NCBI RefSeq assembly: GCF_006345805.1
Contig: NC_043001.1
Coordinates: 103,354,001-103,418,000 of the forward strand
DNA from: Octopus sinensis
Taxonomy: Eukaryota
Length of the DNA stretch: 64,000 nucleotides
Direction of reading: 5' to 3'
Shown: in pieces, positions 1 to 35,189 of the stretch
Position numbering within the stretch: position 1 is the first letter of the stretch
Layout: every line of letters starts with the position of its first letter
Translations under genes and position numbers: made by a program
The notes under the pieces: generated by a model
Databases searched by the model: none
The model's input: the letters and a program-made list of their open reading frames with translations, nothing else
What the model was told of the DNA's origin: nothing

Positions 1-116
1 TTATATTTCGGAATGGTCATATTGCCAGTTTAGCCAATAAAAACACACGCACTATATATTTGGTGTTATTTTGCTTCAGTGTTATTTATTTTTTACATTA
101 ATCTTAATCTTATTTC

Positions 117-160
117 GGCCAGAGTTATTTCGTCACACTCCTGTGACCGCATCAGTGGTC
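117..160 (-). ncRNA. Degenerate type I hammerhead ribozyme motif in the PLE 3' pseudo-LTR
   Basis: Minus strand reads GACCA CTGATGCG GTCAC aggagt GTGAC GAAA taacTC TGGCC. Stem II is perfect, stem I nearly perfect, and core CUGAUGA is altered. Confidence 0.6.
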
Positions 161-506
161 CTTTGTTTTCTTCTTACTTATTTGTGTCTCTCCTTACTAA
201 CCGTCAGCCATTTTGATATTCTATTGTATGTCTTCATTTGCGCATGCTTATATCTCTATGTGCGTCTATGTTTATTTAGTGTATGTGGGGGGATGCCTGT
301 AATATTTGTATCTTCTGTTTATATATGTTCATGTAATTTGTATTTTGTTTTTGTTGTTTTTGTTTTTCTTATTTTGTTCAGTGTTTACATCCACTTATTA
401 TTATCATTACATATGCTTGTATGTATGTATGTATGTATGTATAACATGTAGTATGTATGTATGTATAATAAATCGAATATATATATAATAATATATATAT
501 ATAATC

Positions 507-548
<42 letters not shown>

Positions 549-624
549 TTTATTTCTATTAGTTTATTTATCTGTGTATTTATTATGTTTTCAGGATTCT
601 CTATCGTCATATGTTGTGGTGTGT

Positions 625-1136
625 GTTAGTGCTCCATTCTAGTTTTCTATTCAGGCTAGGTTATTTTCTTTATGTGTGTAGCTTCTGTAATTGTCTATTG
701 TTGCATCTGTTCTATTGTGGACAATATTTTAATTTCTATGTTATTGATTGATCCCCCGTGTTCCTGTTCGGCGTGTTGGTACAGAATCGATGAGCTTTTA
801 CCTTCCTTAAGTTGTCTCCAATGTCCGTTTACCCGCTCTCCTATGCTTCTTGCCGTTTCCCCTACGTATGTCGTTGTCTTGTTACTGCATCCTCCCTCTA
901 TACATCTTATACTATAGACTACATTTCTGGCTTTACAGTTTGTTTTATGGGCTAAATCTACATACTGTACAGTACTTATCCGTACAGGGGGTTCTACTAA
1001 AAGGATAGGTTCTACAAATTATAGATTTGATAGAGTTGCCTGGCTTTTCAACAACCTTAATTCTTAGCTTAAGTTTGTCTAGGGTCCTTCTAAAGCGGTA
1101 CGCCAGTTCACCTCCAGGGGTGGTGTCAACGAACAT
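625..1136 (-). pseudogene. PLE GIY-YIG endonuclease and Cys/His linker, frameshifted
   Basis: After a frameshift at about 945 the frame reads HKTNCKARNVVYSIRCIEGGCSNKTTTYVGETARSIGERVNGHWRQLKEGKSSSILYQHAEQEHGG (VVY..YVGET..R motif with CCHH residues), then hits stops. Confidence 0.88.
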
Positions 1137-1200
1137 GACACTCTGGTATTTATGGCTATCATATCAAGAGTTGGCCTTCCTATTTTCTTTTTTGTCCTTT

Positions 1201-3417: not shown

Positions 3418-4150
3418 GACACAACTTTTATTCGTGTTTTTGTGACTGTGGTTATCTGTGTGTATGTTTGTGTGTCGGTTCTCCCTATAATTGTTGTTGT
3501 TGTTGTATACGATTTTTTCTCTCTGTTTATGTTTTTGTTTTTGTAACTATTGTTTGTGTCTATGCATTCATTTTTTCTATTGTTGTTGTTGTTACGGTTC
3601 GTGTTGCTTTTGTTGCTACGGTTGTTATTGCTGCGCTCATTATTGTTTGTGTTGTTGTTGCTGCGGTTAGTGTTTTTCACGTTGTTGTTGTTGTCGCAAG
3701 TGTTGTTGTTATTGTATCTATTTAAATTCCAACGTATTTTTGTGAACGACTTTTCAATCTCGGACAGGCATTTGATGGTATTCACCTTACTATACACTGC
3801 ATACTTTGGTGGTAGCTGAAGTATCGATATTTCGTCTGGGTCCGTTGTTACTCCCCCATAGATGTTCGTTTCATTGTCTTTATTGAACTCTTCTGGTAGT
3901 AGCACATCTTCCATAATAATTCCATTTATTGTATCTGGATACTTCTGCTTTTCTTCCTTTGCGAGCTCATATTGATGTTTTTGTTTCAATCACGATAACT
4001 TCCTCTTAAAATGGATATTGCATTGGTGTATTACGTGTCTGTTTTCTTCATATATTAAATCCATTAGTGTGGTTTTCTCCTTTCGTGTGGTGATGTTTTT
4101 AATTTCTTTTAAAAATATACGTATGTAATTATACACATCACTCCATATAC

Positions 4151-4213
<63 letters not shown>

Positions 4214-4245
4214 AGAGAGTGGAACACGAGTTGTGATATATACAA

Positions 4246-4559
4246 AAAGGAAATGAAGAAATGCTGACAAAATAGTTTAAGTAAAGGAGAGAGTGTATTT
4301 AATTAGGTGAAGGTTCTTTTACCGGTTACGCATTTGTTATGCTTATCAAAAGATATATTTTTAGAGCGATAGAGTTCCTTTCTGATAGATTTTTTTCTCT
4401 TATCAGATAAGAGAAAAAAATCTATCAGAAAGGAACTCTATCGTTCTTAAAAATATCTTTTGATAAGCATAACAAATGCGTAACCGGTAAAAAGAACCTT
4501 CACCTAATTAAATACACTCTCCTTTACTTAAATTATTTTGTCAGCATTTTCTTCATTTC

Positions 4560-4563
<4 letters not shown>
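4246..4563. repeat. Fold-back palindrome, about 159-bp arms, 1-nt loop at 4405, with (AT)n tracts on both sides
   Basis: ctcttatc-a-gataagag centre. Arms stay complementary out to aaaggaaatgaagaa / ttcttcatttccttt with few mismatches or indels. Confidence 0.95.
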
Positions 4564-4601
<38 letters not shown>

Positions 4602-4962
4602 AATAGGATTATAATGGCGCAGGATGGCTGTTTGGTTAAGTAGCTTGCTAACCAACCACATGGTTCCGGGTTCAGTCCCACTGTTTTTGCCCCCTACTTG
4701 CTTGACACCCGATGCTGTGGTGTTACGTCCCCGTCACTTAGCGGTCGGCAAAAGAGACCGATAGAATAAGTACTGGCGGTGCTCCAGCATGGCCGCAGTC
4801 AAATGACTGAAACAAGTAAAAGAGTAAAGAGTAAAGAGTAATATGTTGAAATTTCAATGAAGGATCCTGGGATCTAGGTTAGAAACCAGTTCTTACTCTA
4901 TTGACCTTGAAATATACTGAATAATGACATACATTCTTATGTACACACACACATATAGATAG

Positions 4963-4999
<37 letters not shown>

Positions 5000-5625
5000 A
5001 GGGGAGGGAAGGAAGAGAGAGAGGGAAGGAGGGAAAGAAAGAGAAGAAAATTCATGCCAGCAGCGACCAGTGGGAGCGCCAGATGCATTTCACCCGTTCT
5101 GGGCCTTTTTATTGATGCGTACTCGCAGCCAGCCAGTCGTATCCTCAGACGAAGATACGACGATTCGTTGTCTCTGGTGTAAGAATATGTGACTATTGCA
5201 TTCGGCAATGTTACTATCATCGACAGTGTTTACACATAAAGTTTGATACGTAGATTACTATTTTAAACAAATACTGTTTCAAAACCGTATATCAGATGCT
5301 TTGTTATCGGAAACAAAGAATTATTTTACGATCATGTGACTGGCTGAGAGTAAGCGACATTGAAAAAGCCCCTAAAAGGACCAAATGCTACTGGTGTTCT
5401 CGATCGTTGTTGGGACGAGTTTCCGTCTCCCTTTGATGTTGAATGTACTTTTAACACAGAAATTCCATAAAGGATGTTATCTCAGAACAAATACTGTAAT
5501 TACTGGCCTATCGACAGTGTATATACATTAAGCATGATACATAGACAACTATTTTAATTAAACGCTGCCTCGATTGCCCAGACAGGATACATACATACAT
5601 ATAATATATACATATATACATAATA

Positions 5626-6416
5626 TATAATTAAAATCACAATAAGAGTGAAAAAAATTGAATATTAATTAATAACATCAATTCAAAACACCAAGTGGCC
5701 TAGCGTAAAAAAAGACTGGGATACAGTAAAAATCATTAATACAAGTAATAAGAGAGAGACCACATGTGGTCACTCTAACGCAAGATATAGATCAAGCAAT
5801 TGCTTGAGAACAATTCTTTAGTGGTGGATTCCCTTTGCGGATCTATATCTAGCGTTAGAATGACCACATGTGGTCTCTCTCTTATTACTTGTATTAATAA
5901 TTTTTACTGTGTCCCAGTCTTTTTTTACGCTAGGCCACTTGGTGTTTTGAATTGATGTTATTAATTAATATTCAATTTTTTTCACCCTTATTGTGATTTT
6001 AATTATAAATTAATATGTTCTCAACCGGCAGTAAATTACTGGGGTAGTATTTACATCCGTATTTTCAACCGCGCCAAAATGAGGATATTTGAACATAACT
6101 GCAATATAATCGGCTGTGCCGTTCGCCTTTGCTCGGCTTCGTATGGATTTTGGCGTTCGGTTCAGCAAATTATATTTTTGATATACTCTACTGAGGATTC
6201 GAAAATGATTATGTAAGTAAAATTACACATCTATTAACGATGAAACAATGTATAGAGTTAATCTATTTTTTGGTTATTTTTCATTTGCCCTGCCCGCTTA
6301 CATTCTTGGCGTGTTGAATTATTGCTTGAGAACAATTCTTTAGTGGTGGATTCCCTTTGCGGATCTATATCTAGCGTTAGAGTGACCACATGTGTTCTCT
6401 CTCTTATTACTTGTAT
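5626..6416. mobile_element. Small non-coding element: inverted arm plus 522-bp partial tandem, ending in an AT/CA microsatellite
   Basis: 5626-5793 is the reverse complement of 5840-6007, and 5799-5894 is repeated directly at 6321-6416. This layout resembles PLE pseudo-LTRs. Confidence 0.75.
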
Positions 6417-6514
6417 ACATACATACATATATAGTATATATATATATAATATATATATATATATTTATACCTACATATATACATACACACACACCCAACA
6501 CACACACACACACA

Positions 6515-6560
<46 letters not shown>

Positions 6561-6612
6561 TATATATATATACCTACATATATACATACACACACACACA
6601 CAACACACAAAC

Positions 6613-7010
<398 letters not shown>

Positions 7011-7705
7011 ATATATATATATATATATCTATATATATATATATGTGGTTAGGCTATTACGCCAGTCCAGAAACCGGTCTATGTGAGTCCAAATACTTGA
7101 ATGTATGCAGAGAGATTGTTTTGGCCCGTTTGCTTTCGGACAGTTGATTTCTATAGTTATTATCAGTGTATTTTGGCGATTTAAATAAGTGTTATTTCTA
7201 GCAGATAGACAAACTTAGTATGTCCTTTGATTAATTTTTATCCTTCAGTTATTTAATGCTGTTTGGGGGGCCTGCAATCACCTATATTATTGCTTCTGTT
7301 ATCATCATTTTTAAATTGTTACACTAGAAAATCACAGGGTCAATGATATATTCACAAATTATTTTTTCGTGAATTATTTGCTCCATATCGAAATTATATA
7401 TATATATGTAAAGTGGCGGACTGGCCAGGTTCCAGCTTGTCCGATGGAAAGTGGGCCCCTGCACCATTAGACTCCATATATGGGGGCCTATGTTAGTATC
7501 TAAGGGGCCCATCCCCTCAAGTTTGAGAATTTTTTTATTCACTCCTGGAAGAATACATTAATTATTTCAGCCTTGCTGTGTTTGTAGACAGTTGAAAAGA
7601 ATACTTTTACAAAAAAAAAAGAAAGAAAAATTAAATGATAGCATTGTAGTTGCAGGTGGACCCCTTAGTCTCCTAGCAACCAATACTTTTAGACCCAGTT
7701 CGACA

Positions 7706-7758
<53 letters not shown>

Positions 7759-7760
7759 GA

Positions 7761-7801
<41 letters not shown>

Positions 7802-8009
7802 GAGAGAGAGGAATTATTTATCTACTTCAATAAATTCGGGCAATTTTTTTTAATGACAATTTTATGTTTATTACATAATTATGATGCCAAAACAAATAGA
7901 TTTATAAATCTTAGGTCAAAACCTCCTTGACAATTTTCAACATGTCCTCCGTCTGTATCACTGCAAATTTCATATCTATCGTTGCAAAGAATATTTTTGA
8001 AGTACACTG

Positions 8010-8395
8010 CTAACTTTACGTTCTGAGTTCAAATTCCACCGAGGTTGACTTTGCCCTTCATCCTTTCGGGGGTGATAAAATAAGTACCAGTTGAATACTG
8101 AGCCATTACCTCGGAATTGCTGCCCCTGTGTCGCAATTTTAAACCAATATTAATATTATTATAGGCGGCGAGGTGGCAGAATCGTTAGCACACCGGGCGA
8201 AATGCGTAGCATTATTTCGTCTGCCGCTACGTTCTGAGTTCAAATTCCGCCGAAGTCGACTTTGCCTTTCATACTTTCGGGTCGATTAAATAAGTACCAG
8301 TTACGCACTGGGTCGATATAACCGACTTAATCCCTTTGTCTATCCTTGTTTGTCCCCTCTATGTTTAACTCCATGTGGGCAATAAAGAAATATAT
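8010..8395 (+). mobile_element. tRNA-derived SINE family B (partial copy + full copy)
   Basis: aggcggcgag.tggcagaa..gttagca...gttctgagttcaaattccgccga.gtcgactttgcctttcat; many other copies in the window. Confidence 0.85.
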
Positions 8396-9062
8396 GTTAA
8401 TGTTATTATTGAATTATGAATTGAATAAATAAGAATAAACCTATTTGATTGATCTCTTAAATAATTTAAACAAACCAGTTAGTACAAATAAATCCTTTTT
8501 GTTTTAGTAGTGTATCCTAATGATAGCTAAATCGATGACTTAGTAGCTAGGACTAACTGTCCAACCATAATAACAGTGAAGAGGGCGAGTTTGAATCGTT
8601 GATTACATCATCGATGGATCTAAGCTAAAGACTGTAAATAAATAGGACCTCGTAATTGTAGGGGTCATGTCAGGGCTTATCTTGAAATCAATAGAAAAAC
8701 CAAAGTGATGACAATAGATCAATAACTGCTTAATAATTGCGGCAATAAATTTGACTGCTTAACTGACTCTTACATACATACGTACATACGTACATACATA
8801 CATACATACATACATACATACATACATGCATGCATGCATACATACATACATACATACATACATACATACGTACATACATGCATACATGCATACATGCATA
8901 TATACATACATACACACAAAAATATCCTGTTGTTGATATTGAAGTTCCAGTGAAGGAGCCTTGGATATAGGTTAGAAACCGGCTCCTACTCTATTGGCAG
9001 GGAATCTTTAAATAAAACTGAATACTGACATACATACACACACAATTGCAAAAGAGCTATTA

Positions 9063-9285
9063 ACAGTTTCATGCTTTAAGATACATTAAATTAGTAGATT
9101 TATATTACATCCTATGTATTTCCAAGAAATCATTCAGACTCAGTTAATAACGTTTTTTCTCGTATTTTCTCATAGGCCAGCATTCTTGTTTTTAATGCTA
9201 TGAACTGAACCTGAATGATTTCTTGGAAATACATAGAATGTTATATAAATATGATAATTTAATGTATCTTAAGGCATGAAACTAT
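9063..9285. repeat. Imperfect inverted repeat (83-bp arms, 57-bp spacer), probable MITE or fold-back
   Basis: 9063-9145 is approximately the reverse complement of 9203-9285. Confidence 0.75.
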
Positions 9286-9374
9286 TGGTAACTTTTTTGT
9301 AATTATTTATTTCAAATGACATTTATCTCCCACCGGATGGAGTAATTTTTTGCTGATCCTACCTATAATGGACC

Positions 9375-9410
9375 TATAAATAGTATATATCTATATACCG
9401 ATACCAGTGT
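9375..9410 (+). promoter_or_regulatory. Possible TATA + Inr core promoter of the calcitonin-like gene
   Basis: TATAAATA at 9375-9382 and CCAGT with A at 9406 (31 nt from the TATA T). A non-coding first exon is required because the ATG exon has splice acceptors. Confidence 0.3.
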
Positions 9411-9939
9411 GTGTGTGCGCGATGACAATGGGCACTCAATACCGCGTTGGTGGATGAAAATTCTTTATTTGTGTTTTAAGGCTACCATTAGATTCATTTT
9501 AAGAAAATATCTTAAAAATTTTCAAGCCGATCACATGGAGAAATTGTGATATTTTCTTAACATGAAATACACAAATAAAGTTTGTGTGTGTGTATGCAAT
9601 TATTAACTTGTGCGTATGTAATGTCTTTAAAATATAAAATAAAAACAATAAATTTTAAAATAATTTTGACTTAAAAAAACATTAAAATGTGTGTTTCGAA
9701 GATCTGCGATCTTCTGGACAGCGGCATTATAGTCGCTCCAATTCATTGATTGTTGGCTTTCTAATATAAATCGTTTAAAGAAATCTTTTAAAATTCCCGA
9801 AAACAATTCCTGCTTGTTCGGCAAATAAGCCGAGGTAACTTTTTCAACGTTGAAATCTGGGACCAAAATTTCGGCTTTTATGCCGGCATATCCTGTACTT
9901 TTAATGCATGGGTTAGTATTAGTACAGTATACCTCTTAA

Positions 9940-10150
9940 GGGTCTATGAAACAAACGCCCGCATCTGTGTGACTGTGTGAAATGTTTGTTCACTATTTTA
10001 AGGAATATCCTTCCCACACAAGTTTTAACGGTCAGTGAGAAGGGTGACACAAACCAAATGACTTTAACGGTGGCATTTCCTTTGCAGGTGTTAGGGCCCG
10101 GCATATAGGAGATACGGTCCTTAAATCCACTGGACACCAGAGCCTCGTTG
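9940..10150 (-). mobile_element. Penelope/Poseidon-type PLE fragment (thumb-linker)
   Basis: KVIWFVSPFSLTVKTCVGRIFLKIVNKHF resembles the PLE 'IIWFNPPFS.NVKTN.G..FL.LI.KHFP' segment. Confidence 0.7.
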
Positions 10151-10271
10151 TAATATAGAGCAATAGTAGAAGACACTCGCTCGAGGTGCCACGCAGTGGG
10201 ACTGAACTCTGAACCATTTGGTTGGGAAGCAAACTTCTTACCACACAACCATATAGAGAATTCTTTGACAT

Positions 10272-10660
10272 AGGCGCAGGAGTGGCTGTGTGGTAAGTAG
10301 CTTGCTAACCAACCACATGGTTCCGGGTTCAGTCCCACTGCCTGGCATCTTGGGCAAGTGTCTTCTGCTATAGCCCCGGGCCGACCAATGCCTTGTGAGT
10401 GGATTTGGTAGACGGAAACTGAAAGAAGCCTGTCGTATATATGTATATATATATGTATGTGTGTGTTTGTGTATCTGTGTTTGTCCCCCTAGCATTGCTT
10501 GACAACCGATGCTGGTGTGTTTACGTCCCCGTCACTTAGCAGTTCGCCAAAAGATACCGATAGAATAAGTACTGGGCTTACAAAGAATAAGTCCCGGCGT
10601 CGATTTGCTCGACTAAAGGCGGTGCTCCAGTATGGCCGCAGTCAAATGACTGAAACAAGT
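10272..10660 (+). mobile_element. tRNA-derived SINE family A (full length)
   Basis: Head ggcgcaggagtggctgtgtggtaagtagcttgc...ggttccgggttcagtccc, body ttgggcaagtgtctt, tail gctccag.atggccgcagtcaaatgactgaaacaagtaaaa. Other copies at about 4616, 12560, 14120, 18440, 20905, 39180, 45755, 48785 and 50625. Confidence 0.88.
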
Positions 10661-10749
10661 AAAAAAAAAAAAAAAAAAATGTGTAATTTCGTCATATTAA
10701 GTCGTCTTTTTTCTCTTCTCTTTCAGATTCTTTATTTTCTCCAACAGCG

Positions 10750-10838
10750 ATGGCCATACTTTACTATCTCCTCACTTTGCTTCTTGTGCTTCCTTATAAC
10801 TGGGCTTGGTATGATCCGCAACTGAGCGAATTAAACAG
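10750..10838 (+). CDS. Calcitonin-type neuropeptide precursor, coding exon 1 (signal peptide)
   Basis: MAILYYLLTLLLVLPYNWA/WYDPQLSELN is a hydrophobic signal peptide. Two polypyrimidine-CAG acceptors (AG ending 10726 and 10747) lie upstream. The phase-2 donor AG|GTAAAA at 10839 is in phase with 18317. Confidence 0.78.
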
Positions 10839-10944
10839 GTAAAAGCCTTTCTGTTTTTTTCATAGGGTTGAATTAAATTGAACTATCGAAGATATAGATG
10901 CGCGCGCACATACACACACGTTATTAAATGCCATGTCTATTTCT

Positions 10945-11112
10945 ATATCACGTGATCGACCAGATTATAGGATGCTGTTATACATCGCTGGTCACAATGT
11001 GCTTTGCATCATTTCAGTTTTTGCATGATGTCACCACGCATCATTCGAAACACAACGCATCGTTTGGTCTGGGAAGCGAACCCACGATCACTAGATCGCT
11101 AGTGCAAAACTC
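10945..11112 (-). mobile_element. tRNA-headed SINE family C with RTE-derived tail
   Basis: Head ggcgcgtggcccagtggttagag...gggttcgcttccc. Tail tgttataca.cgctggtcacaatgtgctt is shared with the RTE relic at 37400-37730. Confidence 0.7.
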
Positions 11113-11272
11113 TAACCACTGGGCCACGCGCCTTCTCCTATTTCAATTCCTATTTCAAAATGTATTCAATACACGAAGATTAGGCAGGAAATCACACACT
11201 CACCTATAAGAGAACAGGGCATGCGCAGACTAGAAACAACAGCCACGCTTAATGGATGTTAGCTTACAAGGC

Positions 11273-11755
11273 ATTAGTCATACACATCAAACATATTAGA
11301 CATATACATCAAACATATTAGTCATATACATCAAACATATTAGTCATACACATCAAACATATTAGTCATATACATCAAACATATTAGTCATACACATCAA
11401 ACATATTAGTCATACACATCAAACATATTAGTCATATACATCAAACATATTAGTCATACACATCAAACATATTAGTCATATACATCAAACATATTAGTCA
11501 TACACATCAAACATATTAGTCATATGCATCAAACATATTAGTCATACACATCAAACATATTAGTCATATAATCAAACATATTAGTCATACACATCAAACA
11601 TATTAGTCATACACATCAAACATATTAGTCATATACATCAAACATATTAGTCATACACATCAAACATATTAGTCATATACATCAAACATATTAGTCATAT
11701 ACATCAAACATATTAGTCATATACATCAAACATATTAGTCATACACATCAAACAT
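11273..11755. repeat. Minisatellite, 22-bp unit (catatacatcaaacatattagt), about 22 copies
   Basis: Direct tandem array with a C/T variant position and one 1-nt deletion; no spacers. Confidence 0.97.
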
Positions 11756-11819
11756 ACATGACGGCGTCTGATGAAAAAGTATCCGGGCCGATGCTATATA
11801 AAGAAAACTACACACACAT

Positions 11820-12010
11820 GTTTTGTTTTTGGATTTAGTTTGCAAGATTCTTTATATGAGTTCGTGTGTTGAAGTATATTCTGTTGTGTCTGGGGAGAGT
11901 CATTTTCTTTTTGTGCTTTATAATGTAACACACTCACCGGTAAAATTTCCACTTGTTTCTTGTTTTTATTTTCCTAAAATTTTCGTTGCGTCTTGCAACC
12001 CTTTCGATAG
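11820..12010. repeat. Dispersed non-coding repeat (pseudo-LTR-like); also at about 48510-48605 and 49560-49760
   Basis: ttgcaagattctttatatgagttc.tgtgttgaag.atattctgttgtgtctggggagagtc...cactcaccggtaaaatttcc is seen at three loci. Confidence 0.8.
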
Positions 12011-12094
12011 TTTCTCGGTGATTGTGTTACATTATAAGGCAAAAAATGAAAATGACTCTCTCCAGACACAACAAAATACACACACAAGAACCCG

Positions 12095-12480
12095 GCATTT
12101 AATCCCCTTCGAAGTGGTCCCCTTCCTGCGCCATTTCCATTGATGGAAGCATTCCTGGAACTCCTTTTAAGGGAACGCGAGCAGCTGTCTCAGTGCATTC
12201 GCTTCTATTACTTCGATGTTTTGAAATCTTGCTGGGGGGGGGGGGTCTTCCATTGAAAAAAACTAAGCCTTGGATTCGGGATCGTAGCTATAGACCCACC
12301 GTTCGTCACTTGTTATGACCGTTTTCAAAAGGTTTTCGTCTTCTTCGACACAATCAAGGAGATCCTGCGCAGCTAAACCTCTCTCATATCTTTGAGACCA
12401 CCACACTCTACACACTTTACTTCAAAGCACTTCTATACACAACGGAAGTGAACGAGAACGTTATAACTTAACGATCAGAT
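12095..12480 (-). mobile_element. mariner transposase relic (second copy 13738-14040)
   Basis: LAAQDLLDCVEEDENLLKTVITSDERWVYSYDPESKAQ (TGDETW motif) and C-terminal KEFQECFHQWK...HFEGD; internally deleted. Confidence 0.85.
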
Positions 12481-13223
12481 AATTGGTGATCATAGGGTTA
12501 CTAGTGCAGTTCGAATAAGGAATTTACAAAAAAAAACCTATTTTCTAAGTATTTTTTCTTTTATTCTTTTATTTGTTTCAGTCATTTGACTGCGACCATG
12601 CTGGAGCACCGCCTTTAGTCGAGCAAATCGACCCCAGGGCTTATTCTTTGAAAGCCTAGTATTTATTCTATCCGTCTCTGTGGCCGAACTGCTAAGTGAC
12701 GGGGACGCACCAGCATCGGTTGTCAAGCGATGTTGGTGCACAAACAGACACACAAACTTATACATACATACGACGGGCTTCTTTCAGTTTCCGTCCACCA
12801 AATTCACTCACAAGGCTTTGGTCGGCCCGTGGCTTTAGTAGAAAACACTTGCCCAAGGTGCCACGCAGTGGGACTGAACCTGGAACCACGTAGTTAGTAA
12901 GCAAGCTACTTACCACACAGCCACTCCTACGCCTAAATAAGTTAAATAAAATTAAGCTAGGCAATAACTTAAGTTTTAAAACATAAAAAAATATAATATG
13001 TTGCATAACTATGAATTTGTAAAATTAAAAATTCATAATGTTTATATTCACAGATGCACCCCTGCGGGTTTTTAGACGCTTGTAATTAATAATTAGTACT
13101 AAACAGTTCTGAAACCGTTGCCTGGAACAGTGGGTGGCAACACCATTTGGACTGAAAATGTTTTGATGTCTTGCAGGCCAAAGCGAACGAAAATAAAATC
13201 TCAATTACAGCCTCACACAATTA

Positions 13224-13266
<43 letters not shown>

Positions 13267-14791
13267 CGGGCCTGTCTACCAAATCCATTCACAAGGCTTT
13301 GGTCGGCCCGAGTCTATAGTAGAAAACACTTGTCCAGGTTGCCATGCAGTGGGACTGAACTGGGAACCATGTAGTTGGCTTTTAGTTCTATTATTTATCA
13401 AAAAACTATACACAGACATTCAAACATATAATGGGCTTCTTTCAGTTTCCATCTACCAGATCCACTCACTAGGCTTTGCTCAGTCTGAGGTTACTGTAGA
13501 AGACACTTGTCTAAGGTGCCATGCAGTGGGACTGAACTGGGAACCATGTGGTTGGCTTTTAGTTCTATTATTTATCAAGAAAACTATACACAGACTCACA
13601 AACATATAATAAGCTTCTTTCAGTTTCTATCTACCAGATCCACTCACTAGGCTTTGCTCAGTCTGAGGCTATAGTAGAAGACACTTGCCCAAGCTCCCAC
13701 GCAGTTGGACCGAACCCGGAACCAAGTGTTTGGTAAGGGACAGCGAACAGCTGTCTCAGTGCATTCGCTTGTATTTCTTCGATGTTTTGAAATCTTTCTT
13801 GGGGGTCTTCCACTGAAAAAAACTGAGCCTTGGATTCGGGATCGTAGCTATAGACCCACCGTTCGTCACTTGTTATGACCGTTTTCAAAAGGTTTTCGTC
13901 TTCTTCGACACAATCAAGGAGATCCTGCGCAGCTAAACCTCTCTCATATTTTTGAGACCACCACACTCTACACACTTTACTTCAAAGCACTTCTATACAC
14001 AACGGAAGTGAACGAGAACATTATAACTTAACGATCAGATAATTGGTGATCATAGGGTTATTAGTGCAGTTCGAATAAGGAATTTACAAAAAAAAACCTA
14101 TTTTCTAAGTATTTTTTCTTTTATTCTTTTATTTGTTTCAGTCATTTGACTGCGGCCATGCTGGAGCACCGCCTTTAGTCGAGCAAATCAACCCCAGGGC
14201 TTATTCTTTGAAAGCCTAGTACTTATTCTATCCGTCTCTGTGGCCGAACTGCTAAGTGACAGGGACGCACCAGCATCGGTTGTCAAGCGATGTTGTGGCA
14301 CAAACAGACACACAAACATATACATACATACATACATACGACGGGCTTCTTTCAGTTTCCGTCTACCAAATTCACTCACAAGGCTTTGGTCGGCCCGAGG
14401 CTTTAGTAGAAGACACTTGGCCAAGGTGCCACGCAGTGGGACTGAACCTGGAACCACGTAGTTAGTAAGCAAGCTACTTACCACACAGCCACTCCTACGC
14501 CTAAATAAGTTAAATAAAATTAAGCTAGGCAATAACTTAAGTTTTAAAACATAAAAAAATATAATATGTTGCATAACTATGAATTTGTAAAATTAAAAAT
14601 TCATAATGTTTATATTCACAGACGCACCCCTGCGGGTTTTTAGACGCTTGTAATTAATAATTAGTACTAAACAGTTCTGAAACCGTTGCCTGGATCAGTG
14701 GGTGGCAACACCATTTGGACTGAAAATGTTTTGATGTCTTGCAGGCCAAAGTGAACGAAAATAAAATCTCAATTACAGCCTCACACAATTA

Positions 14792-14840
<49 letters not shown>

Positions 14841-15671
14841 ACGTCGGGCCCGTCTACCAAATCCATTCACAAGGCTTTGGTCGGCCCGAGGCTATAGTAG
14901 AAGACACTTGCCCAAGCTGCCACGCAGTTGGACTGAAATTGGAACCATGTGGTTGGCTTTTAGTTCAATTATTTATCAAGAAAGCTATACACAGACACAC
15001 AAACATATAATGGGCTTCTTTCAGTTTCCATCTACAAGATCCACTCACTAGGCTTTGCTCAGTCTGAGGTTACAGTAGAAGACACCTGTCCAAGGTGCCA
15101 TGCAGTGGGACTGAACTTGGAACCATGTGGTTGGCTTTTAGTTCTATTATTTATCAAAAAACTATACACAGACACGCAAACATTTAATGGGCTTCTTTCA
15201 GTTTCTATCTACCAGATCCACTCACTAGGCTTTGCTCAGTCTGAGGTTATAGTAGAAGACACTTGTCCAAGGTGCCATGCAGTGGGACTGAACTGGGAAC
15301 CATGTGGTTGGCTTTTAGTTCTATTATTTATCAAGAAAACTATACACAGACACACAAACATATAATGGGCTTCTTTCAGTTTCCATCTACCAAATCCACT
15401 CACTAGGCTTTGCTCAGTCTGAGGTTATAGTAGAAGACACTTGTCTAAGGTGCCACGCAGTGGGACTGAACTAGGAACCATGTGGTTGGCTTTTAGTTCT
15501 ATTATTTATCAAGAAAACTATACACAGACACACAAACATATAATGGGCTTCTTTCAGTTTCCATCTACCAGATCCACTCACTAGGTTTTGCTCAGTCTGA
15601 GGCTATAGTAGAAGACACTTGCCCAAGCTGCCACGCAGTTGGACCGAACCCGGAACCAAGTGTTTGGTAAG
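12168..15671. repeat. Tandem segmental duplication, unit about 1.56 kb (mariner relic + SINE A + 178-bp repeats)
   Basis: 12182 matches 13748 and 12540 matches 14100. The junction has TAAG microhomology (12168-71, 13734-37, 15668-71). Confidence 0.92.
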
Positions 15672-15700
15672 CAAGCTACTTATCACACAGCCACTCCTGC
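14835..15700. repeat. SINE-derived tandem repeat, about 178-bp unit
   Basis: gggcttctttcagttt recurs at 15012, 15189, 15367 and 15545; a shorter array lies at 13270-13740. Confidence 0.92.
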
Positions 15701-16074
15701 GCTGGAAGTCTGGAAAATAAAACTATAGACATCAATCGCTTATTTGGTTTATTTGTTATATTTGTGAAAACAGTTCTGAATAACAATGCATCGAAGGCGC
15801 TCTTGTTTTAGGATGAATTTCTAAAAACCGTAAATTAGATTTTTAATAAACGGCGACGCCCATGAATGTCTTTTTTCGGTTCCCAGTTCAAAGAACGCTG
15901 CTCTTCTCTCTTACAAAATGAGAACAAATTCGATTATGAAGTTATATCTGTTTGCGATCGTTGGCCAACCCGAACAAAGCTGACCTCGCGCGAATAACAA
16001 TTCATTTACAAAAACTCCAAAATGCAATCAATGAAATCCACACACATTGACAACGACACACGCATAAGCCTATA

Positions 16075-16080
16075 AACACT

Positions 16081-16166
<86 letters not shown>

Positions 16167-16720
16167 CACACACACACACACACATACACACACACACATA
16201 AACATACAAGCACACAAATAAACACACACACACACACACAAACACACAAGCACACAAAGAAACACACAGAAACACTGATACAAACATACACACATTTATA
16301 TACACACACATATATACACACACGCATATACGCACACACAAATACACACTCACGCACACACACACATGCACAAACACTGATACAAACACATACGCACATA
16401 AACGCACACGCACACACACACACAAACACACGCACGCGCGCACACACACAAACACAAATGCACTCACACACAAATAAACAAACACACACACACACACACA
16501 AACACTGATACAAACACACACACACCCGAACACACGCATGCACACACACACGCACACAAACAGAAATGTACTCACACACAAATATACAAGCACACACATA
16601 CACAAACACCGATACAAACACATACACACCCAAACACACGCACACACACGCACACAAATACACAAACGTGCTCACACTCAAATGAACAACCCCCCCACAC
16701 ACACACATGGACACACACTC
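16075..16720. repeat. Compound (CA)n microsatellite
   Basis: Long degenerate CA-rich array; source of the spurious VCVC ORFs. Confidence 0.97.
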
Positions 16721-17034
16721 ATGAAAACGTTGGTCCACATAATGTTGTTGATATTCAAGCTTCAGGATGTCCCGAGCGCGTTTCTACGACTGAAGAATAC
16801 GAAGAAAAGACATTCCTATCAGAAGACCGGCTTCATTTTTTTTTCCCCCATTTTGAAGTTTCCTTCCTGTCTTGATATCAGTCTTCCGTAGAGTTGCATG
16901 GGACCCGAAGGTAAGGTTTGTAGAGAAGTAAGTGGTGAGTGGGGGGGCGTACAAAAAGGTTTTAAAACCTACTTCGCAAAGTATAGGATTAACTTAAGAT
17001 TCGGTCGCTGTTTTTCAAATATTGGTTTCAAATT

Positions 17035-17421
17035 TTGGCACAAGGCCAGCAATTTCGGGAGAGGTGGTAAGTTGGTCCCAGCGCTCATTTGGTGCTTATT
17101 TTATCGATCGCGATAGGGATGAGAGACAAAGAAAACTTCGGTGGAATTTGAACTCATGATATAAAGATGGACAAAATGCCGCTAAGTATTTTGTCCGGCG
17201 TGCTTACGATTCTTACTCTAGGCACAAGGCCTGAAATTTTGGGGGAGGGGGCCAGTCGATTAGATCGACCCCAGTACGCAGCTGGTATTTAATTTATCGA
17301 CCCCGAAAGGGATGAAAGGCAAAGAAGACCTCGGCAGAATTCGAACTCAGAACGTAAAGACAGACGAAATACGGCTAAGCATCTCGCCCGACGTGCTAAC
17401 GTTTCTGCCAGCTCGCCGCCT
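17035..17421 (-). mobile_element. SINE family B (nested or tandem pieces)
   Basis: Reverse complement of the family B head and body; ends ...ctgccagctcgccgcc. Confidence 0.8.
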
Positions 17422-18316
17422 TAAGGCTGCTTATCAAATGCTAACAGGAAGTAATTATATAGTGTTGCAATGAGGGACCTAATCCAATAACATAAATTTC
17501 CACATTCGTCATTTTAGCCTTAAGCTATTGTCCTGCAATACACACGCACTGACTAGTTCCCCTTACTATACTACCAATGTGTCTCGAAGTTTATCCCACA
17601 CCGTTGTTATTGCCTGGAAACACGCTGCGGTAGTTAAGAATCTCGTTGTTAAATATATAGCTAAACACTACATCGATCTAGGAGACGTTAGTGGTTATAG
17701 CCTGTGTGAACTGGTATCCAATAGCAACTTGACCGACGTGGTACGTTTAGGTCACCATCTGACAACCGTTACAGTGAGTGAAACTGTAAAAATGTAGCAA
17801 ATCTGTTTTAGTTTGGATTATTGTTTGCGTTCTTCGCTTCAGTCGTGCGATATTTCGACAATAATGGAATGCTATGATGATCATACTTAATTTGGCACTC
17901 TGTCGGTTACAATGTCCTGCGGGTTCCAGTTGATCTGACCTGCGGAATAGCCTGCTCGTGAAAATTAACATGCACGTGGCTGAGCCCTCTACACACACGC
18001 ATACGCTTAAAGTAGTTTTCAAGGGGAGTCAACATGACTCAGAAGGGTACAAAGCTGGCCCTTTGAATGGCGGGTACGACTCATCTGACAAAAATGAGTT
18101 GTACGTCTATTCATAGCTATTCGCTGGGGCATTAGGAGAGTCAGTTAAGTTGGTTTGCAAGACTGGGTGACTCAACAGACGCTTATATCTTCGCCTTTTT
18201 CGTTCGTTCGTTAAACAATGTCTGCATGCATGAAATACACAGTATTAAACAGAAAATATATCACAGGATAAATAACTCTTTTATCTTCTTTTCTTTTTTT
18301 CTGTTGTGGTTTACAG

Positions 18317-18394
18317 TATTCGTGTCAATCCTAGTGCAAGGGATGTACCGCTAAACAGGTTCCAAAACAGACTTCAGACTCTTCTCAGACAAGC
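18317..18394 (+). CDS. Calcitonin-type precursor, coding exon 2 (propeptide)
   Basis: Strong acceptor ttttcttttttctgttgtggtttacAG and donor GC|GTGAGT. The exon is 78 nt, phase 2/2, and reads (S)IRVNPSARDVPLNRFQNRLQTLLRQ(A) with no stops. Confidence 0.82.
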
Positions 18395-18908
18395 GTGAGT
18401 ATAATCGTGAGACAACGATTTGTTTCATGACTTTTAATCTTTTATCTTTTACTTGTTTCTGGCATTAGACTACGGCCATGCTGGAGCACAGCCTTGAAGA
18501 ATGTTTAGTCGAATTAATCGACGCCAGTACTTGTTTTTAAAAACCTGGTACTTATTTCATCGGCTCCTTTAGCTGAATTGCTAAGCTACAGGGATGTAAA
18601 CACAACCAGCATCGGATGTCAAGTAGTGGTCGGAACAAATACAGACACAAGGACACACACACATAATAACGAAAGTGGTTCGACACAATACAAAACCAAA
18701 ATGGAACATTCAGTTGTCACTAATAGTGGCTGAGGGTGTAGGGTAGCACCTACATTGCTAGAAACAAGAGTCAAAGAACCTGATAGCTACAAAAAGCACA
18801 TCATCTATATACTGACAGGGGTGATAACTGCCCCACAGCGAGCGACGTCACTATACTAGCACGCTAGTTTCCGTTGAAATTAAAGCTCATCAGTAATGAT
18901 ATATATAT

Positions 18909-18967
<59 letters not shown>

Positions 18968-18968
18968 G

Positions 18969-19130
18969 TTATGAGAGATAATGGTGTCAATAAGACTATT
19001 GCTTAACTATTTTCTCACACCGTTTCCGATGAAGGAATATAAAAAAATATCCCGGAAATAGCTGTAAAACCTATTTATAAATGTTCTAAAATGTTCACAG
19101 CCTTGGTTTTTTATCTCATTCTGAAAAAAA
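18969..19130 (+). mobile_element. PLE pseudo-LTR fragment with hammerhead-like motif (19022-19070)
   Basis: GTTT CCGATGA a GGAATAT aaaaaa ATATCCC g GAAA TAGCT GTA AAAC: stems I and II, palindromic short stem III, one core substitution. Flanked by (AT)n/(AG)n. Confidence 0.65.
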
Positions 19131-19704
19131 ATTATATATATATATATATATATTTAAGTAGGCGAATGAATTATCCTTATATACACAAAGGTACTACATG
19201 AGTACCTATATCGCTAATGATAGAAGTCAAAAAATACTTCTGTACCACCGAATCGTCACAAATCTATTACAGACAAGACAGGAAAAAATATCAGAGAACA
19301 ATAATAATGTCTTACCTCAAATGGGTCAGAACAAGAAAATGCTGGTCAACCTGGTACCGGTTTCGCGAACTTTCGCAGGAATGACGATTTATATAATCGT
19401 CAAAGTTTCATAAACGTATTTATATATTTTATAAGGTTATACTCCAAACAAAGATGTGAGTAAACAATTTCTTTCTTTATACATTAGCATAAATGCGAAA
19501 CTGTGGTGGGGAATAAACACACTTTAGATTCGTTTGGATTTGTTTCTGACATATTTTATATTCTAAAAAGAAGTTCACTGCAATTTACCGTGAAGAAAAA
19601 GAAATTGCTCGATTATAGTAAGGGATAAATATATTGTTGTCAGATCAGTTGCGCCCTCCTTTGGGTCCCTAGATTCATTTCTGGCTCGTTATCCTCCTAT
19701 GGCA

Positions 19705-20126
19705 GAGAATACCTATTTCTTTATTACCCACAAGGGGCTAAACATAGAGGGGACAAACAAGGTCAGACATAGGTATTAAGTCGATTACATCGACCCCAGT
19801 GCGTAACTGGTACTTAATTTATCGACCCCGAAAGGATGAAAGGCAAAGTCGACCTCAGCGGAATTTGAACTCACAACGCTGCGCCTGACGAAATACCTAT
19901 TTCTTTATTACCCACAAGGGGCTAAACACAGAGGGGACAAACAAGGACAGACATAGGTATTAAGTCGATTACATCGACCCCAGTGCGTAACTGGTACTTA
20001 ATTTATCGACTCCGAAAGGATGAAAGGCAAAGTCGACCTCGGCGGAACTTGAACTCACAACGTAACGCAGACGAAATACCGCTAAGCATTTCACCCGGCA
20101 CGCTAACGTTTCTGCCAGCTCGCCGC
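19705..20126 (-). mobile_element. SINE family B partial tandem (about 183-bp period)
   Basis: tacctatttctttattacccacaaggggctaaaca is repeated at about 19710 and 19893. Confidence 0.88.
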
Positions 20127-20593
20127 CCAAAGAGGGGTGACCCTCAGCTGATTAGTAAACCGCCGTAGCTTTATAATAAATTAGTCAATACTAGTGACTC
20201 ACTGGCATTCGTTGACCGCCCAGTCTGAACAAATACTTAAGTTGAAGCGTGAAGCAATGATGGGAAATAAATTTTAGGTGAGTTCAGATATGTTTGTAAC
20301 TTTTAAAAGCAATTTCCCTGGAGTTTACCGTGCTAGAAATTTATAACGAGCCAGAATTCCATTTTGGGGTCCAACAGAAGGCGCCACTGAAGTCACGATG
20401 ATGTATTTATATATAAGAGAGAAATTTTTCATGGTAAACCGCAGTGAAATTGCTTTTAGATGCATAAGTATGTCAGAAACATATTTGAAATAACATGAAG
20501 CTTCTTCCTTTCTTTATGTAAATAAAACAAAAAAAAACACACTTCGCTCAGATTCTTGATAAATATATTGTTTTCATTTCCTTTCTGTTATAG

Positions 20594-20777
20594 ACGGAAG
20601 AGAGGCTGTGATAGTAAAATAGGCGGGCTTGGAGGCCAGTGTCCAACGTACCACACCTCGTTAGATTTAGACAGATGGCGTTATCTGGACAGTTCGCAGA
20701 GTCCCGGCCGGAGGAAGAGGAATATCATTCAATTAAAATCAAAACTGCAGCAGAAGCGTGGCACCAATCTTATGTGA
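20594..20777 (+). CDS. Calcitonin-type precursor, coding exon 3 (mature peptide)
   Basis: Acceptor ttttcatttcctttctgttatAG, then RKR-GCDSKIGGLGGQCPTYHTSLDLDRWRYLDSSQSP-G-RRKR-NIIQLKSKLQQKRGTNLM*. This gives convertase sites, an N-terminal Cys pair and C-terminal Pro-Gly (amidation). Confidence 0.9.
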
Positions 20778-21824
20778 AGAATGCTTTATTAATTCCTAAA
20801 CAAAAACAAACATTATTTATCTCGTGTTTATGTTTCGAGAATAAAGAGAAATATTTCGGCAACATCTCGGTTTTGTTTCCTTTGTCTTTTGTTTGTTTTC
20901 AGCTATGAGACGCCGGTCATGCTGGGGCACCGATTGAAGAATTCTTGGTCAATCGAATCTATCTCAATCCTTTTATAAAACCTGGTACTTACTACTATCG
21001 GTCTCTTTGGTCGAACTGCTAAGTTACGGGAACGTAAACACACCAACGCCAGTTGTCAAGTGGTGGTTGGGGACAAATAGAGTCACAAAAGCACACACAC
21101 ACACACACGCACAGATACACACACGCACACATATGCACGCGCGCGCACTGCGGTCAATGTTGATTAATTTGCGATGAAATTTCTGTAAATATTTGTTTAC
21201 CAATTATAATTACTATTGTTTGAAATTGGTTGCTTTAAAAATAAATTCACTTAACCCAAACAAATCCAATGTGTTTTAAAAGGTTTCTCATATTATAAGA
21301 TTTAAGCTTTATTAATCCATTACTTTTGGCACAAAAACAAAAATTATGGAAGCCGGATTAAGTCAATTCGAATAACAATAGAACAGCTGGATGTGAAGTC
21401 AGATCGTGAGGAACGTCTGCCGCTACGTTCTGAGTTCAAATTCCGCCGAGGTCGACTTTGCCTTTCATCCTTTCGGGGTCGATTAAATAAGTACCAGTTA
21501 CGCACTGGGGTCGATATAATCGACTTAATCCGTTTGTCTGTCCTTATTTGTCCTCTCTGTGTTTAGCTCCTTGTGGACAGTAAAGAAATAGGTATTTCGG
21601 CTGTCGTTAAGTTCTGCGTTCATATTCCGTCGGGATCGACTTTGCAAACATAACTTCTTATGTAATTCTTTGACTTTTAAGATTATAAAGATTAAAAAAG
21701 AATATCCAGTAACGGATTCGGCATGAAAATTACATCGACGAATAGGTACGAACATGCTTGATGTAGCGAGTAAGAAATTTTGATCAATTAAAATTGCGTC
21801 AACAGTAACGAGAAAGAATGATTA

Positions 21825-26007: not shown

Positions 26008-26215
26008 TTCTTCTTCTATTGTGTCCAACCCTGCACATTGTGGAAACTTGAGGGAGAAAGGGCTGCGGCAGAACCCTGTTTGGCATTCCTTACAGCTGCT
26101 TGTACTGGAGCAATAAGAAATGAATGAAATGAGTGAAATGAAATGTCTTACAGTTCTATATTTAGGAGATGAGGAATTATGCCCACGGGCATAATAATAA
26201 TAATAATAATAATAA

Positions 26216-27060
26216 AAGCAGAGAGCGAAGGTTTCATCCTGGCTGCTCAAGACCAAAGCCTATTAACCCGGAACTACCAGGCCAATATGATGAAAAATGG
26301 AGCAAACCCAAAATGCCGATTCTGCAACGACATGATTGAAACAGTGGACCACCTAATCTCTGGATGTAAAGTCTTAGCACCAGTGGAGTATAAATTAAGA
26401 CATGACAGAGTTGGCCAATATCTCCACTGGCTAATAAGTCGGCATTACAATATCAAAACTGCCGACAAGTGGTATAATCACCACCCTGAGGCTGTAACTG
26501 AAGGAGAAAATGTAACCATTCTGTGGGACTTTCCAGTACATACAGACCGAACCATCAAGGCCAATAAACCAGATATTGTTGTGAAAGACCAAAACAATAA
26601 AGTTTGCTTATTGATCGACATGAGCATCCCCTGTGATCATAATATCTCAGCGAAAGAGTTTGACAAGCTCAGAAAATATAAAGACCTACTCATTGAAATT
26701 GAGAAAATGTGGCATCTCAAGGCGGTTACAATACCAGTGATCGTAGGAGCACTAGGAATGATCAAGAAGGGAACCGAAAATTATATGAGAATGATCCCTG
26801 GCTTACCATCCCTGCAAGAAGTGCAAAAGATTGTCTTAACTGGTACATCACACGTATTGAGAAGAGCATTGTCGATGTGAGAACTGTTGCTGCTCATGTA
26901 TTTTAATTTAACTTTAAAAAAAAAAAAAAAAAAAAAAAAGAACGAACTACTGAGTTTAGTTTAATGGCCTACCAATATACACTATGAGTTTCTTTGCCCT
27001 AGGAGTCGGGAAGACACTCGGCAAGAAATGGAAGAAAATTTGAAAGAAGAAAAAAAAAAA
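26216..27060 (+). mobile_element. 5'-truncated R4/Dong-like non-LTR retrotransposon (CCHC finger + restriction-like endonuclease)
   Basis: CRFC..MIETVDHLISGC zinc finger, RHDRV, WDFPVHTDRTIKANKPDIVV, LIDMSIP, K..KY.DL and VIVGALG motifs; stop at 26880. The 3' UTR ends in an A-run, and (TAA)n lies on both sides. Confidence 0.9.
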
Positions 27061-27303: not shown

Positions 27304-28444
27304 AATGAAATGTCTTGATCGAGTTCATAACGTCTCGCCCGGCCAGGAAGGGAGCTCATAACTCAATGAATATGAGTCAAACAGCCAAACTGCGAGGTCC
27401 CATGTTTCCATTTGAACACGAATTAGATTTCAAGTATTTCTAACAAAGCCCTTCATCAGTAATATAAGTATGCATTGCCTTATGTTATTCGGTGCTAAAG
27501 CTTTCTATATTTATTTCATCACCAACAGGAATTGATACCGCCTCTTGTCCAACATCTGTAGTCTCATTGTACTCTAGTGGTTATATAAGTATTTCAATGT
27601 CTTCAGCCTGCCACGCTCCTCCCTATTTTTCTGTTTCTTTTCTCTCGTTATATCGTCCATTGGCTCAATCTACTTCACCCACTCACCCGTTTCTAACATC
27701 TCTCCCCTCTCTCAATCATTCTCTTTAATCAAATTATCCACCCACCATAGACGACTTTGTTTCTTTTAACATGTCTCTGGTTTCTTAACGTTTTTATGAA
27801 AGACATCAACATCAAAACCGAAACTCGATATATCGGCCGTGAATGAATACATCTATTCTTAAATTCTATTGCGCTGCTTCCTTCTATTAAAGATTGTTTT
27901 GTTTCACAATAAGGAGACGTGGGACTTGACCAACCGAAGAATACAAGACTCACTACTGAATACACAAAACAGAGAGAAAACGAACAAGAACAAAAGAAGA
28001 AACCTTACCAACAGCATCCTTTATACAACAATATCAATGTCCCTTGTTTCGCCATGTTATTCATGTAAATGCAACTTGATACGTTTAAAGCTATTCATTG
28101 GAAATTTCATAAAACAATTGCTAATAATTGGCAGATGATAAATATAATTGTTCAATAAAGACTAACTTTGGAATTTGAGAGAGAATCTATTATATTAACT
28201 AAAGCAGTAGAATTTATTGAAAACGGGCCATGAATTATGATTGCGTATTGCATATTTTATTTTCATTTTATGATAATATTGGTGAACAATGGCATAATGG
28301 GCCTTAGGATTTGATCTGATCAGTCACGAGTTGCCTGCATTCCTGACGCTCATAACGGAAAGGAATTCAGTGCAACATATATCAGATAAAGCTATAAATA
28401 CTAGCATGGAGGTTTTGGGCTGAAAGCCATTTGGGGTTTGAAAG

Positions 28445-34885: not shown

Positions 34886-35189
34886 ACATACACATACATA
34901 CATACATACATACATACATACAACATACATACATACATACATACATATACACATACATACATACATACATAAATACATACATACATACACACATACACAC
35001 ATACATACATGCATGCATGCATACATACATACATACATACATACATACATACGTACATAGTACATACATACATACATAAATACATACGTACATACATACA
35101 TACATACATACATACATACATACATACATACATACGTACGTACGTACGTACGTACATACATACATACATACATACATACATACATACAC

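Follow-up and report, generated by a model that had tools for sequence, protein, structure and literature searches.

Genomic organization of the LOC115212395 locus

The gene LOC115212395 of Octopus sinensis lies in a 64,000-nucleotide stretch of DNA (positions 103,354,001 to 103,418,000 of contig NC_043001.1, hereafter the window), and it probably encodes the precursor of a calcitonin-type peptide. The locus is on chromosome CM016863.1, where positions 103354750-103384777 agree base for base with positions 750-30777 of the window. The parts of the gene are as follows, in window coordinates; a slash marks a splice junction.

10727-10749, plus strand: 5'-untranslated stretch of the first coding exon, with the acceptor AG just before it at 10725-10726
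10750-10838, plus strand: coding exon 1, 89 nt, with donor AACAG/gtaaaa
10839-18316, plus strand: intron 1, 7478 nt, phase 2, GT-AG
18317-18394, plus strand: coding exon 2, 78 nt, with a pyrimidine-rich acceptor tttacag/T and donor AAGC/gtgagt, encoding the propeptide SIRVNPSARDVPLNRFQNRLQTLLRQ(A)
18395-20593, plus strand: intron 2, 2199 nt, phase 2, GT-AG
20594-20777, plus strand: coding part of the terminal exon, with acceptor ctgttatag/A and a TGA stop at 20775-20777
20595-20603, plus strand: RKR site
20604-20705, plus strand: predicted mature peptide GCDSKIGGLGGQCPTYHTSLDLDRWRYLDSSQSP, 34 aa, with a predicted Cys2-Cys13 disulfide and Pro-amide
20706-20708, plus strand: predicted amidation Gly
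20709-20720, plus strand: RRKR site
20721-20774, plus strand: C-terminal tail NIIQLKSKLQQKRGTNLM, followed by the stop at 20775-20777
20778-20868, plus strand: 3'-untranslated region (UTR), with AATAAA at 20840-20845; its end is approximate

Splicing of the three exons in silico gives a coding sequence of 351 nt, that is, 116 codons and a stop. The start codon has G at both -3 and +4. The three exons, the GT-AG introns, their phases (2/2) and the 116-aa translation are identical, letter for letter, to those of the original prediction. C61 and C72 are the sole cysteines of the precursor, with 10 residues between them.

The gene extends beyond these exons at its 5' end. The acceptor lies 23 nt before the ATG, and a 131-aa isoform of Octopus vulgaris (CAI9723353.1) runs in frame through it. 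This isoform reads ...GHE-DSLFSPTA-MAIL..., in which DSLFSPTA is the in-frame translation from the acceptor at 10725-10726. The acceptor and the isoform together indicate at least one further 5' exon, more than 10.7 kb upstream and outside the window; the upstream MSKRGHE exon of the isoform was not found in positions 1-10726.

Precursor and predicted processing

Exon 1 encodes the predicted signal peptide MAILYYLLTLLLVLPYNWA and the beginning of the propeptide. The N-terminus is hydrophobic, with a Kyte-Doolittle mean of 1.8-2.2 over residues ~1-14. A heuristic prediction places the signal cut between A19 and W20, and a parallel cut, between ...IAA and W, would fall in a related precursor (P0009, described below). 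RKR59 stands upstream of the peptide and SP-G-RRKR downstream of it. Both sites are kept in Octopus bimaculoides and in both copies of the corresponding exon in Argonauta hians.

The processing of this precursor, including the signal cleavage site, the disulfide and the amidation, can be inferred from its sequence. The hydrophobic N-terminal segment would send the 116-aa protein into the secretory pathway, where signal cleavage would take place near the A19-W20 bond. Prohormone convertases would then cut after RKR59 and at RRKR95-98, and a carboxypeptidase would strip the basic residues. An amidating enzyme would use Gly94, leaving Pro-NH2, and the two sole cysteines would close an N-terminal ring through the Cys2-Cys13 disulfide. 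By analogy with known members of the family, the 34-residue product (calculated monoisotopic mass 3708.70 Da) may be a secreted hormone or neuropeptide whose target is a class-B G protein-coupled receptor (GPCR) of the calcitonin/DH31 type.

Annotation status and orthologues

The gene was originally described as hidden and as one that annotation could miss, which does not hold. The identical protein is deposited as XP_029637143.1 (uncharacterized LOC115212395, O. sinensis) in RefSeq and as CAI9723354.1 (O. vulgaris) in GenBank, and the orthologues of O. bimaculoides and A. hians are also annotated. A gene model with exactly these exons is present in four octopod genome annotations. The O. bimaculoides orthologue (XP_014768345.1, LOC106867831) has 116 aa and differs in 1 residue; its UniProt entry, A0A0L8HYE1, is named "Calcitonin peptide-like domain-containing protein". 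The orthologue of A. hians has 113 aa and 68% identity, and keeps the Cys pair, RKR and PG-RKKR. A homologous precursor with the Cys pair and a PG-basic site, which the original prediction had expected in a related cephalopod, is thus present in A. hians.

A full-text literature search found no paper with the peptide string, and the portion of the De Oliveira 2019 supplements that was searched holds no match. The octopus peptide of Cardoso et al. is a different one. From these two facts it follows that the present peptide is a divergent new member of a known family, unreported in searchable papers, although public databases already contain its gene model and a calcitonin-like name that was assigned automatically.

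Conservation and selection

The exon structure is shared by three species. The annotated proteins of O. bimaculoides and A. hians are reproduced only by an 89-nt exon 1, a 78-nt exon 2 and the terminal exon, with GT-AG introns throughout; exon lengths, phases and splice sites are therefore conserved in O. sinensis, O. bimaculoides and A. hians. When 12 kb of Octopus DNA was compared with 28.5 kb of Argonauta DNA (E < 1e-8), the colinear plus-strand alignment covered only exon 1 (from 10705), exon 2 and the terminal exon with ~90 nt of 3' UTR. Similarity to both Argonauta terminal exons extends to 20858-20868 and then ends. One more alignment lies downstream of the gene at 21470-21589, out of order. 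Of intron 1, 44% can be aligned to O. bimaculoides and none to Argonauta.

In the Octopus-Argonauta comparison, the overall ratio of nonsynonymous to synonymous substitution rates (dN/dS, Nei-Gojobori) is 0.13; dS is above 1 and near saturation. By region, dN/dS is 0.05 for RKR, the peptide and GRRKR, 0.22 for the propeptide and above 0.3 for the C-terminal tail. A prohormone in which the flanked peptide is the functional part would be expected to show this pattern of constraint.

Assignment to the calcitonin-type family

LOC115212395 is, with good probability, a single-peptide precursor of the lophotrochozoan calcitonin-type ('CT' or 'CALC-like') family that is processed and acts as described above. 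The original prediction of a calcitonin-type prepropeptide is borne out by the order of its parts (signal peptide, propeptide, RKR, 34-aa Cys-pair peptide, P-G-RRKR and short tail) and by profile searches, which link it to annelid and mollusc calcitonin precursors. The octopod alignment, used as a HMMER query against 1.84 billion representative proteins, gave six matches. These were the Argonauta orthologue, three tandem-repeat artefacts (P0005-P0007), which were discarded, and two calcitonin-type precursors.

The first of the two precursors, CAH1785545.1 of Owenia fusiformis, was matched at E 2.9e-5. It carries two peptides, TCAIGGGLSHHC...SP-G and NCLFNLGGHCATEKAASVADQWHYLNSAISP-G, and the alignment of the octopod profile covers its b-type peptide (residues 148-188). 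The second, P0009, was matched at E 4.3e-4; it is transcript-derived (Logan transcripts, SRR7369732 and SRR8281661-74) and carries PCRLNLGGRCATEIASDLVKAWHYLNSANSP-G. P0009 is the closest non-octopod relative, and the ring of its peptide has the canonical 7 residues (PCRLNLGGRC...). It resembles the octopus precursor in the signal peptide, MASLQYIFPLLFVLPFIAAW, and in the junction of exons 1 and 2 (AACAG/TATTCG, ...NSIR); its transcripts show no nucleotide similarity to the window beyond this AACAG/TATTCG junction. If the source of P0009 is a decapodiform or a nautilus, the ring expansion would be specific to octopods. A wider profile search gathered 47 proteins, including "calcitonin-1" and "calcitonin-2" of Urechis unicinctus; all those with a named source are from molluscs, annelids or nemerteans.

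The octopus peptide agrees with the lophotrochozoan calcitonin-type family in every sequence-level criterion tested. DH31-type peptides are defined by the absence of a Cys pair from the mature peptide (PMC6425005). The octopus peptide is calcitonin-type and not DH31-type because the Cys pair is present.

Ring and tail of the octopod peptide

Ring and tail were compared with those of 25 published calcitonin-like peptides of molluscs and annelids (Cardoso et al. 2020, PMC7200681). The number of residues between the cysteines in this set is 6 in one peptide, 7 in 15, 8 in five, 9 in two and 10 in two. The 10-residue rings are those of Mytilus CALCIIa (CTWGGGMSDEMC) and Capitella (CDVSGGNAGYSC); Urechis calcitonin-2 (CDISAGNAGYAC) additionally has one. 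The claim of an unusually large ring is therefore right against vertebrates (10 residues versus 5) but not within lophotrochozoans, where the range is 6-10 and the loop is often Gly-rich. Since 10 residues are known in Mytilus CALCIIa, the octopus ring stands at the upper end of the known range and not outside it.

The distance from the second cysteine to the amidation Gly is 21 residues in the octopod peptides and in 23 of the 25 family peptides, as compared with 25 in human and salmon calcitonin. The octopus tail, DRWRYLDSSQSPG, contains the family motif D-x-[WY]-x-[YF]-L-x-S-x-x-S-P-G. Against shuffled sequences, a position-specific scoring matrix (PSSM) built from 23 tails gave z = 2.4 for Octopus and 3.1-3.3 for the Argonauta copies. 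When tails were compared in pairs, the eight highest-ranking matches (7-8 identities in 21) were all to b-type peptides. Here b-type means the second or only peptide of a precursor, and a-type means the peptide in first position.

A MAFFT alignment set octopus GLGGQC-P-T against NLGG[HR]C-A-T and opened a three-residue gap in the relatives. By this alignment, the peptide appears to be b-type (ring CxxNLGGxC-x-T, tail D-x-W-x-Y-L-x-S-x-x-S-P-G), with three residues inserted into the ring, which has 10 instead of 7. The insert possibly arose by duplication of an IGG/LGG triplet.

Duplicated terminal exon in Argonauta

The A. hians sequence BAAFZT010000005.1 contains two intact peptide-coding terminal exons, 6.9 kb apart (~27777-28046 and ~34659-34909 of the retrieved piece). 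In each copy, the acceptor is followed by a dibasic site, the Cys pair, a PG-basic site and a stop, and similarity extends into the 3' UTR. The annotated Argonauta protein uses only the distal copy. The unannotated proximal copy encodes QKR-GCNSQVGGLGGQCPTYNASVDLDRLRYLNSAQSP-GRRKR-SIIQFKSKMQHHSNLH followed by a stop. Between the copies, dS is saturated and dN/dS is 0.16. This arrangement suggests that the copies are alternative terminal exons, each for a calcitonin-type peptide of its own. The Octopus window contains no second copy of the terminal exon.

A more far-reaching reading can be put forward only tentatively, and it is more likely wrong than right. According to it, octopods carry a lineage-specific, ring-expanded b-type peptide (7 to 10 residues, with an in-frame IGG beside LGG) that has been strongly constrained since before the Octopus-Argonauta split, and the choice of 3' exon in Argonauta could yield two peptides. 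If this is true, the Argonauta exon choice would be an independent parallel to vertebrate calcitonin (CT)/calcitonin gene-related peptide (CGRP) splicing, and the enlarged ring might influence which of the two lophotrochozoan calcitonin/DH31 receptor clusters the peptide prefers.

Weighing of alternative explanations

Several observations weigh against a processed calcitonin-type peptide acting as proposed. Pfam returned no family at E <= 10, including PF00214, for the Octopus, O. vulgaris-isoform and Argonauta proteins. A hidden Markov model (HMM) built from the 25 family peptides gave the octopus precursor 6.5 bits, which ranks 5 among itself and 2000 shuffles; this peptide-only model is short and indel-sensitive and is not decisive. 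The octopod tails score on the PSSM at the low end of the family's leave-one-out range. In the precursor, the proposed signal cleavage site has an atypical residue, N, at -3, and a collection of 15 billion proteins contained no transcriptome-derived copy of the protein. In the peptide, Pro follows the ring directly and the next segment is weakly amphipathic, with a maximal hydrophobic moment of 0.30 (11-mer) as compared with 0.48 in human and 0.60 in salmon calcitonin. An AlphaFold2 model from a 3-sequence alignment is unusable (mean predicted local distance difference test score, pLDDT, 52; predicted template modelling score, pTM, 0.18); it places a helix at residues 78-88, but at a pLDDT of ~50. 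The lack of a Pfam match and of a transcript-derived copy would also fit a chance assembly of open reading frame (ORF) fragments or a decaying or unexpressed gene model. This explanation is extremely improbable. A three-exon structure identical in three species, conservation that within the gene is limited to exons, and dN/dS of 0.05-0.13 at saturated dS effectively refute it, and the significant matches to genuine family members speak against it as well.

Two further explanations accept the gene and its family and differ from the preferred one in the origin or the role of the peptide. It is unlikely that the peptide descends from an a-type peptide with an already long Gly-rich ring (8-10 residues, for example, the Mytilus and Capitella rings given above or CAIGGGLSHHC) and not from a b-type peptide by insertion. 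A ring length of 10 and a GG-containing loop are a-type hallmarks, and the Capitella and Urechis rings start with C-D-x-S as the octopus ring starts with C-D-S-K. Nevertheless, none of the eight best tail matches is a-type, the octopod profile aligns with the b-type peptide of Owenia, and LGGxC-x-T is the b-type ring motif. The position in the precursor (last peptide, G-RRKR, short tail, stop) is also that of b-type or single-peptide precursors such as Lottia CALCII. Somewhat less probable still is that the peptide is calcitonin-type by descent but does not act as a neuropeptide on a calcitonin-type receptor. It would then be a peptide of a non-neural gland (salivary or reproductive), or its target would have shifted through the expanded ring and the weakly amphipathic mid-region. 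The missing transcript-derived copy, the Pro directly after the ring with the low helical moment, and a place among the most divergent members on the family PSSM would agree with this. So would the presence in octopus of at least one other, more canonical calcitonin-like peptide, with a 7-residue ring (Cardoso 2020), which could fill the ancestral role. In contrast, the strongest purifying selection falls on the peptide together with its cleavage and amidation sites, and the 21-residue tail of the family is retained with DxWxYLxSxxSPG. The tail end of calcitonin-family peptides is the end that faces the receptor. A venom or 'doppelganger toxin' was considered and set aside; two reviews of cephalopod venom and neuropeptide mimicry, and the preprints consulted, name no cephalopod calcitonin-like toxin.

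Putative receptor and functional significance

For the preferred calcitonin-type ligand, action on a class-B calcitonin/DH31-type receptor is a reasonable expectation by analogy. In molluscs, calcitonin-type signalling has been connected with shell mineralisation and ion balance. No class has been studied less than the cephalopods for the pairing of calcitonin-type peptides and receptors. The assignment of individual peptides to one or the other lophotrochozoan calcitonin/DH31 receptor cluster is not yet settled (PMC8557429). The strongly conserved 34-residue octopod peptide is a concrete candidate ligand, and its natural ring expansion from 7 to 10 residues offers a structure-activity comparison. 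The general picture is unchanged: an annotated gene with an automatic label that fits into a known family.

Repeats and the remainder of the window

Intron 1 contains a 22-bp minisatellite, two tandem arrays of a 178-bp unit resembling short interspersed nuclear elements (SINE-like arrays) and a long (AC)n tract, at 11273-11756, 13275-13733, 14853-15667 and 16082-16664. The minisatellite has 22 copies with 95% matches. The span of the O. bimaculoides gene is ~3 kb shorter. This shorter span and the repeats in intron 1 suggest that much of the difference in intron size is probably due to repeat turnover.

The remaining window is rich in repeats. It holds microsatellites, SINE-like tandem arrays and remnants of transposable elements, both reverse-transcriptase-like and of mariner transposase. 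Apart from LOC115212395, the 64 kb show no evident host gene. The ORFs among the transposable-element remnants are as follows.

1201-3417, minus strand: 738-aa ORF, weak RVT_1 match below the cutoff
26179-26880, plus strand: 233-aa ORF, weak zf-RVT match
57257-57709, minus strand: 150-aa ORF, mariner-type Transposase_1, E 5e-11

Comparison with known systems

The closest known systems are the b-type lophotrochozoan precursors, which include Lottia gigantea CALCII (XP_009062318), the Capitella teleta precursor of TCQFNLGGHCATESAASVADHWHYLNSPLSP-NH2, Owenia CAH1785545.1 and Urechis unicinctus calcitonin-1/-2. They have the order signal, propeptide, dibasic site, Cys-ring peptide, P-G-(K/R)n and short tail in common with the octopus precursor. 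They also share the 21-residue spacing, the ring end LGGxC-x-T, the tail D-x-W/Y-x-Y/F-L-x-S-x-x-S-P-G and 8 of 21 tail identities. Lottia CALCII has the same single-peptide architecture, with 112 aa (as aligned) compared with 116. The octopus peptide differs from these relatives in its ring of 10 residues instead of 7, in the Pro after the second Cys, and in a mid-region that is more acidic and polar and less amphipathic. Its precursor holds one peptide, whereas most relatives have two per precursor.

Cardoso et al. 2020 (PMC7200681) described another calcitonin-like peptide of O. bimaculoides, GCTTNFEHLCSAQEAAELAELLRFLQSGEGP-G, from LGKD01399119.1. It resembles the present peptide in its G-C start, 21-residue tail and P-G-basic end, and differs in its 7-residue ring, its sequence and its scaffold. 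Neither this peptide nor a second calcitonin-type exon was detected in the 64-kb window by six-frame regular-expression search and tblastn. The profile search did not yield the Cardoso peptide as an annotated protein, and its gene may therefore be the one that annotation truly missed.

Mytilus galloprovincialis CALCIIa (CTWGGGMSDEMCSTVDIDEIQRSFQVIHDRNSP-NH2) and the a-type peptides of Capitella and Urechis are similar to the octopus peptide in the 10-residue ring, the Gly-rich loop, the 21-residue tail (22 in Capitella) and the Pro-amide. They are unlike it in that they stand first in a two-peptide precursor, their tail sequences are dissimilar and their rings cannot be aligned beyond GG. Mytilus CALCIIa activates the mussel class-B receptor CALCRIIc (EC50, the half-maximal effective concentration, 2.6e-5 M) and raises calcium uptake by the mantle (PMC7200681). 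In the oyster, nanomolar concentrations of its calcitonins suffice to activate its receptors (Schwartz 2019, as cited in PMC8557429).

Vertebrate calcitonin, CGRP, amylin and adrenomedullin share with the octopus peptide an N-terminal disulfide ring, a length of ~32-37 residues, a C-terminal amide (Pro-NH2 in calcitonin) and a small precursor with dibasic sites. In contrast to the vertebrate family, the octopus protein has no match to PF00214 (E > 10). The vertebrate ring has 4-5 residues (Cys1-Cys7 or Cys2-Cys7) compared with 10, and the vertebrate tail has 25 residues compared with 21. There is no sign of a second peptide exon in the style of CT/CGRP in the Octopus gene, whereas Argonauta has two terminal exons that appear to be alternatives.

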